From: Bugula neritina
Lineage: Eukaryota; Animalia; Bryozoa
Reading direction: 5' to 3'
Assembly: GCA_964035545.1 (NCBI GenBank)
Contig: OZ037766.1
Span: 29,576,640-29,640,639, forward strand
DNA: 64,000 bases
The notes beneath the pieces are model-generated. The model did not search any database. It was not told the origin of the DNA and worked only from the letters and a program-made list of their open reading frames with translations. Below are positions 55,277-63,849 of the stretch, in pieces. The position numbers were made by a program, and so were the translations under genes. Each line of letters begins with the position of its first letter. Position 1 is the stretch's first letter.

Positions 55277-56998
55277 TTACTGTCAACATAAAATAAAAGG
55301 TGTTAATAATTTTGTATTAAATTACATGCATTGTTGCAGTCATTTTGTCATAAAATACAGTTCAATTGTTTATGAATATAATAATATGCATCACTTGTTT
55401 TTAAATGTAACTGTCTAAACTATTGTTTTATGCTTAAAGTCAATTTCAAAAACTCACTCCTTTGCTTGAACCTTTGTATGAACCCTTGGATTTTCCTCCG
55501 GGGCCTGGAGGACCTGGGGGACCTTTTGGGCCAGCTGGACCTTTAGGTCCAGTATCTCCTTTAGGGCCTTTGGACCCAGCGCTTCCCTTACTTCCAGTGC
55601 TACCTTTAGGCCCCTTTGGTCCTGCAGGTCCTGTTGGTCCCTTTGGTCCAGTTGATCCTTTAGACCCTGATGATCCCTTTGAACCTTTAGGACCAGTTGG
55701 CCCCTAACAATGAAAGCAACTATAAATACAGTAAACTGCACCCTATTTTATAAATTGTCACTATAGATTTCTTTTATTGTAAGTGACTAATTAAATTAAT
55801 TTGTAGTATTGTAAAGTTATATTACACTTGACGGCTTTTAACCATTGACTAGCAAACAAATTTAATTCTATATGAGACATACCTTAGGACCAGGGGGTCC
55901 AGGTGGGCATTTGCAAGATCCATATGGAGTTCCTCTTTTCTCTCTCTATAAACATTGTCAAAATATAGTATATTTATTCAATTATTGTCTAAAAAAATAT
56001 TTTTTTCAATTTTTAGATTTTATTTACCACAATTTATATAAGCATAAACCCCAATAAAAAAACTATACCTTCTATATGTAGATCAATTGCAGAGTAAATA
56101 GTATCTATGCTTATATTCATTAATAAATACAATTTATGAGTCTTATAACGTACCACTAGTTGGCTAGTATTAGCATTAATAGATAGTTTGGCAAGTTGAA
56201 CTTCCAGATATCCAATCTTTTGGTTCTCCTATATAACATTGTATATTATTTTATATTTTATTATGCGATATTATATTATATGCTATAATATACTATGCTA
56301 TATTATAGCATATTTTGTTACATAAATTATATAAATGAGTTAACCCATGAAATAAAACATAAAAAATAAACGTAGCGCTTAGCAAACCTTTTCAAGTAAT
56401 TATTTTTGAAGCAATAACTTCATTTACAAAAATCAGAAAAAAGCAGCTATATTATTTTGGGCAGTCAAATTTTTTCCTATCAATACAGTTTTGAATATTT
56501 TCAAATGATTATAACTTTATCTCACATTTTAAATGAAATAAAAGATAAAGTATATTGCACATTTTTAACTAAAGTTTAAATAGCTTTTGACTTTATAAAG
56601 GCTCACTTGTATATTGAAAAAGTTTAGGCATATATACTAATGAAAATTGCAATCATAGAATGAAAGTGCAGTAATTAGGAACACAAATTAAAAGTTAGAA
56701 TAAGTTTTAAATATAAAAACTTTTCAGTATTGTTTTGAAGAAATAGCCTTTATTTATAGTACAAATAGAATATCTTTAGTCATTAGTTTGGAAAATGATA
56801 CTTAAATTTTTTTACTATTACTACACAAGTACTAAGTTATAGCCAGACCTGATCAAAATGTTTTAACATGTATCCAAACATAAGCATGTTGGCTACTATT
56901 AAGCCAACCACAAAGATAGCAATCAAAAAGCTTCCATAGCCATAGGCCTTGATTTTAGCTTCATTCGAATGTGGTATAAGCAAATCATATTTCTCCAT
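55277..56998 (-). CDS. Short transmembrane Lys-rich collagen, copy A (178 aa)
   Basis: Exons: 56849-56998 (TM), 56154-56228 (heptad-like neck), 55883-55945 ([21 protein letters not shown]), 55458-55703 (Gly-X-Y), and stop TAA at 55277-55279 as the first codon of the last exon. All introns are phase 0. A 5' UTR exon lies at ~57265-57320. Confidence 0.88.
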
Positions 56999-57343
56999 CT
57001 ACATAACAAAGATACAAGGTTTAGAAATTAGAAAGTAATAACAATTATTTTATCCGAATTATCATTGTTCAGCATCGAACTGTTTTATTTTATTACTTTT
57101 GAACTGGTAATTTTTAAAAAAATATGTCTTCATTGTTAGAAAAAAATTGTTAAATAAAATTTGTGAAGCTTGAAACAATTACCACTAAGTATTGGCTGTG
57201 CACATGCATGAAAATCTACCTATGTATAATATACAAGTATTATAGCATAATATTTATTACTTACTTTGCTGGTGTAGTGGGTGTAGAGAGATGATACCAG
57301 AAACTTCAAGGTTATGTACTCTGTAGTGTAATTCTGGTATTAA

Positions 57344-57356
57344 GACTTATATACCA
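57344..57356 (-). promoter_or_regulatory. Candidate TATA box of collagen copy A
   Basis: GGTATATAAGTC on the minus strand, about 25-30 nt upstream of the inferred non-coding exon that ends in a GTAAGT donor at 57264. Confidence 0.5.
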
Positions 57357-60275: not shown

Positions 60276-60637
60276 GTGTGTGTGTGTGTGTGTGTGTGTG
60301 TGTGTGTGTGTGTGTGTGTGTGTGTGTGTGTGTGTGTGTGTGTGTGTGTGTGTGTGTGTGTGTGTGTGTGTGTGTGTGTGTGTGTGTGTGTGTGTGTGTG
60401 TGTGTGTGTGTGTGTGTGTGTGTGTGTGTGTGTGTGTGTGTGTGTGTGTGTGTGTGTGTGTGTGTGTGTGTGTGTGTGTGTGTGTGTGTGTGTGTGTGTG
60501 TGTGTGTGTGTGTGTGTGTGTGTGTGTGTGTGTGTGTGTGTGTGTGTGTGTGTGTGTGTGTGTGTGTGTGTGTGTGTGTGTGTGTGTGTGTGTGTGTGTG
60601 TGTGTGTGTGTGTGTGTGTGTGTGTGTGTGTGTGTGT
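60276..60637. repeat. Perfect (TG)n microsatellite, ~360 bp
   Basis: Directly visible; it generates the spurious HT/CV ORFs in the track. Confidence 0.97.
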
Positions 60638-62399
60638 ATCATAGCTAGAGAGCATCCATTTGATTTCATGAACAGCATCAAATTTTAACTCACAAAATGT
60701 TGTGCTCTTATATAGGAGTGTGAAACAGTAACTTTATAGGCAAATTTTGTTAGTTTTACACACAGTGCTTATATTGCCAACAGATGTTTATTCTGGAAGT
60801 TCTGGTTGTTGGTATTACAGTAGCACACCTGGAGTCATACCTGTCAAAATTGATAAGTTCATTGCCCATGTACAATATGTCTAATGCAATTATTTAAAAC
60901 TTTAGCAATAAAAGAATTAATAGTTGAAAAGTAAATGATTGTTGTCAGGTGCAGATATGTGTATATCTAGTAGATCACAGATATATATACAAATAAAGTA
61001 TTTTTAAAAGTTTTGGTTATATTAGCTTACTTTTTAGCTTAAAAAACTAAAGATATTATTGTTCTTCTTATTATATTGCCGAATTATGTTTTAATATAAT
61101 ATTTTTGCTTACAGAGCTTATATAGGTGGTTAATATAAAAAGTTTGAAAGCAGTACATTTTGGAAAAAGTTTGCTAGAACTAGTAGGTACTTGAAATCAT
61201 CTTAGAAGAAGCTATACAATATCCCATTGTGGGATTACTCTAACTTATAAACTCTATGAAAAGAGTTATATATTGTGACGATAAAAGTAATATCAAAAAA
61301 GTATCCATGTTGTTTAATGTTGAAATAAAACTCAGGAAACTAGGCTGTTAATGCATTTTATGCTGTAAATTAAATTTTGAAAGACTACATAATACACCGA
61401 TACACCACTGATTTGCAAAACTCCTTGCAAAAGAAAGCATAATTTTTAATAACCATGCATAGAATAGAGTTTGTAGTAATTCAATGCTTGAAAGCTTGAG
61501 ATTTGTAGCATTGTCGTGAAGTAGATTGTAACTAGCATTGCATCGAGTTTTATGGCAGAAGTGTTAATAACCTGTTATATCATACATTAGGCTTTAAGTA
61601 AGTGATATTATGTTGGTCCTAGTTACTATAGATGCAGATAAATTTGCCGCAAGGAAACGGTATAGACAAATTTGTTATTCTGAAACAGCTAAGATAAGAT
61701 AGCAGAAAAATACAAATTTAACTTTGAATTGATACAAAAAACTTGTTGTTCAGTTGTACAGCATATGTATGCTTATTGATTTGTGCTTTTTCAACTTTGT
61801 TATCCTAACCTCAAAAGTTTTTGCTCTGCGTGCCAAGTTTTTCAGACTTTGTTTTGTTGCAATTATAATTTAAAGTAACTATAGAAAATTATCTTAAGAT
61901 TCTTTTCGACAGCAATCTTTTATAACAAGCAGCTAAACTGGACCAGTTTCATCAGGCACATAACTATAATGCTCCATATCATCAGACACTGTGCTACGTG
62001 CTATGTACATACCATCAAATACTTCTACACATGATACCATCTATAGGTATATTATATATGATCATATTGATAACTGTGCATGGTTGCATCTTTTCTCCTA
62101 CCAGATTGAAGTTTAGTTGCGGAATGAAAACACTGTTTTATTAGAATATGCACATCAAATAAAAAATCAACTTTGTTTTAAATTTAAATTAAGTGGCAAG
62201 AGAAGAAAGATAACATTTTTGGGCGTGACATAAAAAAACAAAGCAAGGAATAGTCTAAAATGACAAACTGATAGCAAACATAACATATAACTATCTATGT
62301 ATGTATATTTATGTGTCTTGGCTAAAAAATTAAGTGTTTCTATCAATCAGGTTTCTATCAATCAAGTTTGTATCTGTCAGGATTTTATCCAAGATGTGG

Positions 62400-63849
62400 T
62401 TACTGTCAAAATAAAACAAAACGTTCAAACATTAACACAATAGTAAACAATAATGAACATTAGTTTTGTTTTTAAGTACGACTGTCAAAAGCCCCACTTT
62501 TATTTATGCTTGAAGCTACAACTTCAAAAGCTTACCCCTTTGTGCGAGCCTTTGAATGAACCCTTAGAGCTTCCAGGTGGGCCAGGAGGTCCAGGAGGAC
62601 CTTTTGGACCAGAGGGACCTTTAGGTCCAGTGCTTCCTTTAGGTCCACTTGGTCCAGGGCTTCCCTTACTACCACTGTCACCTTTAGGCCCCTTTGGCCC
62701 TGTTGAACCTTTTGGACCAGGAGATCCAACTGATCCATTAGAGCCTGGTGATCCAGTTGGTCCTTTGGGGCCAGGTGGTCCCTTAAACAATAATAAAAAC
62801 AATTCTGATGATATCTTAAACATTTCTGTTTAATAATTGTTTTAATATATTCGTTAGGCTCCCTTAAGTATTTTTCTGTTGCTGCTAAAAATAGTATTAC
62901 ACTAAACTGACTAAAAATCTAGTTAAGTAGAAGAGGTTTCTTTTTGTACAACTTACCTTAGGGCCAGGAGGTCCAGCTTTACATTTACAATCTCCATATG
63001 AAGCCCCTCTTTTCTCTCTCTAAAATATTTTGAGTAAACTTATATTTGTTGAATTATTTGTCAAGACATTATTTTAAATTTCTATGAAATATTGATTATA
63101 AGAACCTAAATGGCAAAACAAATCATGTCACTTTTTTTTGTTAAGACAATGTTTAGTTTGGCGGTATTATTATTTCATTAGAATTATATGTTCATTGAGA
63201 AATAAAATACAAGTTTTACTTACTACGAGATGATTAGTATTGGCATTGTTAGATAGTTTGGCAATTTCTACTTCCAGATGTCCAATTTTTTCATTCTCCT
63301 ATACAAAACATATATTACGATGTATATAATGTTATAGTATATTATGCCATATTATATTATGCTATAATAAATTATGTTATATTATATAATGTTATGTTAG
63401 ATTATGCAGTTTTATAGTATGTTATATTATATTACGCTTTATTATGTTATGCTATATGATAGTGAGATATGTTACATTATATTATTTTATATTATATGAT
63501 ATATGTTATATTATATCACATTATATTACATCATTTTGCTATATATAGTATTATGCAATTTTATATATCACAATATACTATGCTATATTATATTAGGTTA
63601 TTATAGAAGTGCACAAATTAGCTGAAACTTTTTGACTTTTATAATTTTTACTCAAGTTACATCTTAAAAATATTTGCTAGAAATTAAATATAGCCTGACC
63701 TGGTCGAACTGTTTGAACATGTAGCCAAACATAACCATGTTGGAGATGATCAAACCGACCACAAATAAGCCAATCAAAGCACTACCATAGCCATAGGCCT
63801 TTAGTTTAGCATCATTTGAATGTGCGATAGCCATTTCATGCTTCTCCAT
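62400..63849 (-). CDS. Short transmembrane Lys-rich collagen, copy B (178 aa)
   Basis: Exons 63700-63849, 63224-63298, 62957-63019 ([21 protein letters not shown]), 62536-62781, and stop TAA at 62400-62402. Exon sizes 150/75/63/246 are identical to copy A. Confidence 0.88.
63310..63605. repeat. Degenerate (TATTA/TGTTA)n pentamer satellite in a collagen B intron
   Basis: A visible 5-bp period; a shorter version occupies the homologous intron of copy A (~56240-56330). Confidence 0.8.

Follow-up and report, generated by a model that had tools for sequence, protein, structure and literature searches.

The window analysed here is a stretch of 64,000 nucleotides (nt) from Bugula neritina (G000:C2:29576640–29640639), AT-rich metazoan DNA (about 30% GC) within a 216-Mb assembly. 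It contains two small collagen genes, A (55277–56998) and B (62400–63849), which lie on the minus strand and have five exons each in the models that we rebuilt from the sequence. Their coding exons are equal in length (150, 75, 63 and 246 nt), every intron is of the GT..AG type and in phase 0, and each gene encodes a protein of 178 amino acids (aa). In both proteins a predicted cytosolic head of 23 aa is followed by a signal-anchor helix, a two-heptad neck, an REKR site, a CxC motif, a run of 26 Gly-X-Y triplets without a break and a short tail of the xxKG type (Table 1).

The only strongly hydrophobic stretch of A and B comprises residues 24–42, with a maximum of 2.3–2.6 on the Kyte–Doolittle scale in a 19-residue window. 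Lysine lies on the N-terminal side of this predicted membrane helix and acidic residues lie on its C-terminal side, which predicts a type II orientation. The neck has the pattern I-x-x-L-x-x-x-L-x-x-L over about two heptads. REKR occupies residues 76–79, the piece downstream of it is 99 aa long, and the first triplet lies 11 residues past the site. Within the Gly-X-Y block (residues 91–168), Pro takes the X position in 16 of the 26 triplets and Lys is the commonest residue at Y (12 in A and 9 in B). The 99-aa piece carries 17 Lys and one Asp in A and 14 Lys and two Asp in B, has neither Arg nor Glu in either protein, and has a net charge of +12 to +16 per chain. There are two cysteines in total, those of the N-terminal CxC, four residues before GPPGPK, and no polyproline run. 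A (GPP)2–3 segment lies at the far end of the helix, and one K-G-D is common to all copies of the gene. A preliminary description of this DNA had listed two 178-aa paralogs with a transmembrane segment, a heptad-like neck, REKR, a 99-aa piece, about 26 triplets and a KG end; the rebuilt models reproduce this layout exactly, and our recount of the charged residues gives the same numbers.

Searches were made one exon at a time, and the joined model was used only for counts and for the ratio of nonsynonymous to synonymous substitution rates (dN/dS). Exon 4 matched the Pfam family Collagen (PF01391; cut-off 27.2 bits) with 58.5 bits in A and 66.2 bits in B. The Pfam scan of the A and B exons gave no domain besides Collagen, and the cuticle collagen domain Col_cuticle_N (PF01484) had no match at E≤1 in any exon. 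In the ESM Atlas, exon 1 reached a top score of 0.88, to unnamed clusters, which is uninformative.

The stop codon of both genes is the first three bases of the predicted fifth exon, directly behind the acceptor in ttgacag/TAA. The KG end requires a GTGAGT or GTAAGC donor to be spliced to this acceptor, and if the intron were retained both proteins would end in KGVSF. The C-terminus is therefore short and free of a C-terminal domain whether or not the exon 4–5 splice is used. Support for the fifth exon comes from two long paralogs in the same genome, F and G (below), which share the five-exon plan and in which the fifth exon codes for a short tail. A polyadenylation hexamer (AATAAA or ATTAAA) is found 160–260 nt 3′ of the stop in every copy. 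At the other end of the gene, an in-frame TAG lies upstream of the ATG in A and B, and in 12 of 13 family members, from several species, a YAG acceptor behind a pyrimidine tract abuts the start ATG (window 56999–57000 and 63850–63851; L008, L010, L011, L012, L021 and L024–L028). The first coding exon is for this reason probably joined to an upstream non-coding exon or to a trans-spliced leader.

Table 1. Exons of genes A and B, with positions in the window (UTR, untranslated region)
Feature	Position	Strand	Content
Gene A exon 1	56849–56998	-	Cytosolic head 56930–56998; signal-anchor helix 56870–56929; YAG acceptor immediately 5′ of ATG
Gene A exon 2	56154–56228	-	25-aa neck, heptad pattern
Gene A exon 3	55883–55945	-	REKR 55934–55945; CKC 55907–55915; Gly-X-Y triplets 1–2
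Gene A exon 4	55458–55703	-	24 Gly-X-Y triplets 55488–55703, then 10-residue tail; Pfam Collagen E 5.5e-16
Gene A predicted terminal exon	55050–55279	-	TAA 55277–55279 adjoining acceptor; 3′ UTR; AATAAA 55074–55079; 3′ end approximate
Gene B exon 1	63700–63849	-	Cytosolic head 63781–63849; signal-anchor helix 63721–63780
Gene B exon 2	63224–63298	-	Neck
Gene B exon 3	62957–63019	-	REKR 63008–63019; CKC 62981–62989; Gly-X-Y triplets 1–2
Gene B exon 4	62536–62781	-	24 Gly-X-Y triplets 62566–62781, then 10-residue tail; Pfam Collagen E 2.2e-18
Gene B predicted terminal exon	62110–62402	-	TAA 62400–62402; 3′ UTR; 15-nt tandem 62336–62389; AATAAA 62137–62142; 3′ end approximate

A family of seven loci

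A search of this genome with exon 1 gave seven loci, which we call A to G. A and B had been described as a tandem pair, with the suggestion that paralogs be counted past the right edge of the window. Two further copies, C and D, sit just past that edge, and the pair turns out to be part of a four-gene cluster, accompanied by a pseudogene, within a wider family that has 124-triplet forms and relatives in other species. Copy C is on the plus strand and gives a 176-aa model that ends at a stop within exon 4. Copy D, on the minus strand, gives a 184-codon model that is intact apart from its start codon (see below) and has a dN/dS of 0.21–0.31 against its paralogs. Copy E lies on the same chromosome (L009:4500–6250; G000:C2 about 2.366–2.368 Mb) and is a decayed pseudogene: exon 1 contains a stop codon and an insertion, exon 2 no longer has its acceptor, and the Gly-X-Y triplets are disrupted.

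A and B look like real genes under selection. When the copies of the cluster are compared, exons are 76–82% identical and introns 47–57%, and dN/dS is 0.21–0.31; for exon 1, dN/dS is 0.02–0.26. A JGI metagenome contig from a close relative (L021) holds an ortholog of A in which all splice sites, the reading frame and the stop in acag/TAA are retained. This ortholog has one triplet more than A (9 nt). Identity to A is 91% in exons versus 81% in introns, with a dS of 0.27, a dN of 0.033 and an omega of 0.12. Its first 64 residues are identical to those of A, and its exon 1 is identical at the protein level. Both Tyr of the 99-aa piece are replaced by Asn in the ortholog and both Cys are unchanged. 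Of the Lys/Tyr/Cys cross-linking proposed earlier, the part that relies on tyrosine is weakened by this, whereas the two Cys are invariant. On the same contig a convergent fucosyltransferase gene lies about 1.2 kb 3′ of the stop and leaves no room for further 3′ exons; together with a Pfam scan that gives Collagen only, this bears out the earlier statement that the proteins lack a C-terminal globular domain.

The long paralogs F and G are divergently oriented (L010:4700–6962 and L012:3217–6780; G000:C2 about 33.066 and 33.071 Mb) and share with A and B the five-exon plan, the head, the neck and the CxC. Each has exactly 124 unbroken triplets, with 57–64 Lys, 44–48 Asp plus Glu, no Arg, and many Lys, Asp and Met. 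The equal length of their helices suggests that F and G are partner chains of one trimer. Their net charge is only +13 to +16 over 372 aa; since they are far less charged per residue, the charge density of A and B is a derived trait of the mini clade. A search with exon 4 found the lysine-rich mini type in this genome at A to E only, together with orthologs in one closely related sample, in agreement with the earlier view of a lineage-specific lysine-rich mini form. The introns of F and G are packed with tandem repeats of 21–45 nt.

An exon 1 profile, compared with 1.84 billion representative proteins, gave 16 true matches, all of them short open reading frames (ORFs) called on genomic contigs. 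A 2552-aa protein (P0011) that appeared in this search is a spurious match, a repeat protein with an AKLKAAG motif. A word-index search with a 99-aa frame over exon 4 of B returned generic collagens at 41–68% identity but nothing near-identical and no spliced product, within a length window of 54–173 aa that omits proteins of 178 aa. The relatives L022, L025, L026 and L029 have the conserved head, membrane helix and neck, an R-x-[KR]-R site, CxC or CxxC, P-x-G-P-[PA]-G and a longer collagen. Their contigs range from 39 to 47% GC, which indicates that several species are involved, and the samples that hold them are apparently bryozoan. The cleavage motif is REKR in A to E, F and L025, RTKR in G, RVKR in L022 and L029 and RVRR in L026, and every family member examined has R-x-[KR]-R plus CxC immediately before G-P-[PA]-G. 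The head motif N-K-A-K-L-K-x-Y-G-Y is retained family-wide, as are one Gly and one Asn within the membrane helix, and the start Met is present in 17 of 18 family members from several species. In L022 (881–900), the RVKR exon has an in-frame stop two codons past the site, before the CxC, and different splicing or a pseudogene is possible there.

In a tree built on 50 columns the four minis group together (SH-aLRT 97) and are nested among longer forms, and we accordingly regard the mini, acid-free state as a specialisation of recent origin. The long forms (F, G and the relatives) have 59 to more than 150 triplets, and the mini clade has 25–27 and almost no acidic residues.

Several other features of the locus deserve mention. 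A block right after the stop is conserved in copies A to E (window 55230–55276 and 62336–62399; TTGGATAARA...YTGATTGAAAGGAAC) and is probably a regulatory element of the 3′ UTR; in B it has expanded into a 15-nt unit repeated 3.6 times in tandem. We rejected an alternative reading frame of exon 5, with an apparently shared peptide of the form xILDKxLIERN, as the differences between C and D fall mostly at codon positions 1 and 2; moreover, no GT-AG splice from exon 4 reaches this frame, and a conserved 3′ UTR element fits better. Intron 1 of A and B has an AT-rich 15/30-nt minisatellite (unit TATATTATGCTATAT) just 5′ of exon 2 (window 56242–56332 and 63323–63601), and a perfect (GT)181 microsatellite lies between the two genes (window 60276–60637). 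A 20.4-kb stretch of the window (33940–54372) is missing from L021, where position 54373 adjoins 33939 directly; it contains a retroelement-like ORF (43646–43927), a segment of strong GC and AT skew (42–44 kb) and a hexamer-periodic domain, and may be an insertion or a rearrangement. A cluster of short collagens 125 kb downstream (L014–L020) was considered and set aside as a separate subfamily, with another composition (GPRGPPGPRGPHG...) and no match to exon 1. A lysyl oxidase gene (G000:C2:29924900–29928470) lies about 285 kb past the cluster on the same chromosome, probably too distant to matter.

Comparison with known collagens

The preliminary description likened A and B to MACITs, gliomedin and ectodysplasin. 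The features that it saw as shared are indeed shared, but the list left out the nearest analogue, the cuticle collagens of nematodes. MACITs are anchored in type II orientation and have an NC1 domain that forms a coiled coil, a conserved furin site, at least three interrupted collagenous domains and a highly conserved C-terminus of 34 residues that contains cysteines; their cytosolic domains are poorly conserved, they are shed by convertase cleavage, and a survey found none of them in Lophotrochozoa (PMC4678570). MACITs XIII, XXIII and XXV and C. elegans COL-99 resemble A and B in their type II topology and juxtamembrane coiled coil; in both groups the first non-collagenous domain also carries a furin site, and a pair of cysteines lies close to where the helix begins (PMC4678570). 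However, where MACITs have several interrupted domains, A and B have one unbroken helix of 26 triplets. Where MACITs have the conserved C-terminal 34 residues, A and B stop 10 residues past the helix, in xxKG repeats that lack Cys, and have no non-collagenous domain there. The cytosolic part, poorly conserved in MACITs, carries a strongly conserved motif in the family of A and B. In the profile search of 1.84 billion proteins exon 1 showed no relatedness to known MACITs, its matches being the family's own short genomic ORFs and the one spurious repeat protein.

Among the cuticle collagens of nematodes, 117 of 173 are predicted to be transmembrane and 109 of 173 have an N-terminal RxxR, and cleavage by BLI-4 is required for their secretion into the apical matrix (PMC10538796). 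These proteins, which are type II or secreted and of which C. elegans SQT-3 is an example, resemble A and B in being small, in having an N-terminal anchor in most cases, RxxR before the collagen, Cys beside Gly-X-Y and no C-terminal globule, and in forming many tandem paralogs. They differ in having several Gly-X-Y blocks with Cys clusters on both sides, whereas A and B have a single block, one N-terminal CxC and no C-terminal Cys. A and B also lack PF01484, are about half the size, are extremely lysine-rich and belong to another phylum. By this likeness of layout the nematode cuticle collagens are the closest working analogue of A and B.

Ectodysplasin A and gliomedin likewise sit in the membrane in type II orientation and combine a furin site with a short stalk of collagen, but they have a globular end (TNF and olfactomedin, respectively), whereas A and B stop straight after the collagen and its tail. 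The minicollagens of cnidarian nematocysts, like A and B, have a very short helix of tens of triplets; disulfides secure it and it serves as a material, as would also hold for A and B. Cnidarian minicollagens are made with a signal peptide and a propeptide, and both of their ends carry polyproline and a six-cysteine domain; A and B, in contrast to that description, have a membrane anchor, a single CxC and no polyproline.

Since A and B lack what sets MACITs and cuticle collagens apart yet share the principle of both, we treat them as a variant of the membrane-anchored, convertase-released collagens that belongs to neither family. Literature searches for bryozoan membrane collagens or for cationic lysine-rich collagens gave nothing specific.

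A proposed path from membrane anchor to matrix

Taking the layout, the selection data and the family together, we consider it rather probable that A and B are functional genes, that they represent a miniaturised, lineage-specific branch within a bryozoan-type family of type II transmembrane collagens, and that their products are released as a matrix element. The steps that we propose are read from the sequence. Each chain would be inserted with its 23-aa head in the cytosol and would trimerise through the membrane helix, with its family-wide Asn and Gly, and through the two-heptad neck. A polar Asn within a membrane helix drives helix association. The invariant CxC beside GPPGPK could then form an interchain disulfide knot that nucleates the folding of the 26-triplet helix from N to C, the direction taken by other membrane collagens. 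This helix would be about 22 nm long (78 residues at a rise of 0.286 nm) and might be stabilised by (GPP)2–3 at both ends and by the ion pair of the conserved K-G-D; K-G-D/E pairs stabilise triple helices. A furin-type protease probably frees the lysine-rich rod. The trimer left by a proprotein-convertase cut after REKR would be disulfide-linked, would carry a net charge of roughly +36 to +48 and would have no globular end. It would most likely help to build or cross-link an apical or extracellular matrix, such as the body-wall cuticle or a secreted adhesive layer. The rod would bind polyanions electrostatically and offer many Y-position lysines for hydroxylation and for lysyl-oxidase cross-links, and the logic of its release would be that of the convertase-dependent secretion of nematode cuticle collagens. 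The genome encodes convertase P domains, lysyl oxidases, PHM/DBH-type copper monooxygenases and prolyl 4-hydroxylase alpha; the presence of the enzymes needed speaks for feasibility, nothing more. The uses named in the preliminary description (cuticle, adhesive, mineral scaffold or antimicrobial) and the amidation of the C-terminus that it suggested are conjecture.

Several observations weigh against this reading. The neck has only about two heptads and is removed by the predicted cleavage. C-terminal tails vary among the copies, with GKSWKP in C and GPYHG in D, and the Tyr residues are not maintained in the ortholog. In copy D the start codon ATG is replaced by ATA (L011:2947–2949; G000:C2 about 29650946), which reflects a very recent loss of function or else a polymorphism among strains. 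Finally, among the 1.84 billion proteins searched with the exon 1 profile there was no full-length transcript-derived protein, just genomic exon 1 ORFs.

A different emphasis would make A and B chiefly membrane-bound surface collagens that serve in adhesion or as receptors, like MACITs at synapses and junctions, with shedding minor or regulatory and with the cytosolic NKAKLKxYGY acting in sorting or signalling. The head and the membrane helix are indeed the most conserved parts, as the low dN/dS of exon 1 and its identity in the ortholog attest, and MACITs occur both membrane-held and shed (PMC4678570). We nevertheless think this unlikely, as an optimal R-E-K-R stands at a fixed position in all copies and a corresponding site is found in the relatives, there is no ligand-binding domain, and tandem amplification with an extreme low-complexity lysine bias suits a bulk secreted material better than a receptor.

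It is also improbable, in our estimate, that the released trimer is a soluble, non-structural polycation, whether it acts as the cationic partner of a coacervate-type adhesive in larvae or adults or forms an antimicrobial or symbiont-controlling surface coat. A rigid triple helix of 22 nm is atypical for an antimicrobial peptide, and our literature searches gave no comparable cationic collagen. What invites the idea is the strong positive charge of a chain with one or two acidic residues, and the fact that this charge density is derived in the mini clade, the long paralogs spreading a similar net charge over 372 aa.

That the models are wrong or the genes silent, A and B being recent duplicates on their way to pseudogenes or pieces of a longer transcript with extra 5′ or 3′ coding exons, might be suspected from the missing ATG of D, the decay of E and the splice acceptor right before the ATG, which implies an upstream exon or leader, but it is very unlikely given the omega of 0.12 against the ortholog and of 0.21–0.31 among paralogs, the start Met in 17 of 18 members, the in-frame TAG before the ATG of A and B and the convergent gene close to the 3′ end in the relative.

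The reading of A and B as miniaturised, convertase-released matrix collagens can be carried a step further, although here we are tentative and hold the idea to be more doubtful than probable. The mini clade might constitute a new functional class of collagen, a membrane-born, convertase-released, disulfide-knotted rod of 22 nm and natural polycation (about +40 per trimer) that does not form fibrils and instead glues or cross-links anionic matrices of polysaccharide or protein, for instance cuticle or the cement of larval attachment. Such a class would have arisen in one bryozoan lineage by the shrinking of a 124-triplet ancestor and the purging of its acidic residues.

Membrane-anchored collagens released by convertases have so far been described mainly in vertebrates (MACITs) and nematodes (COL-99 and the cuticle collagens). 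The design principle is already known; what is new is the miniaturisation, the charge and the phylum. A genome of the moss-animal type has its own, unrelated-looking family with the same logic of release. With their 178 aa, A and B possibly rank among the smallest membrane collagens, and their lysine chemistry is unusually pure. They offer a compact natural model for N-to-C folding of a triple helix from a membrane anchor and are candidates for a component of the matrix or adhesive of a major fouling animal.

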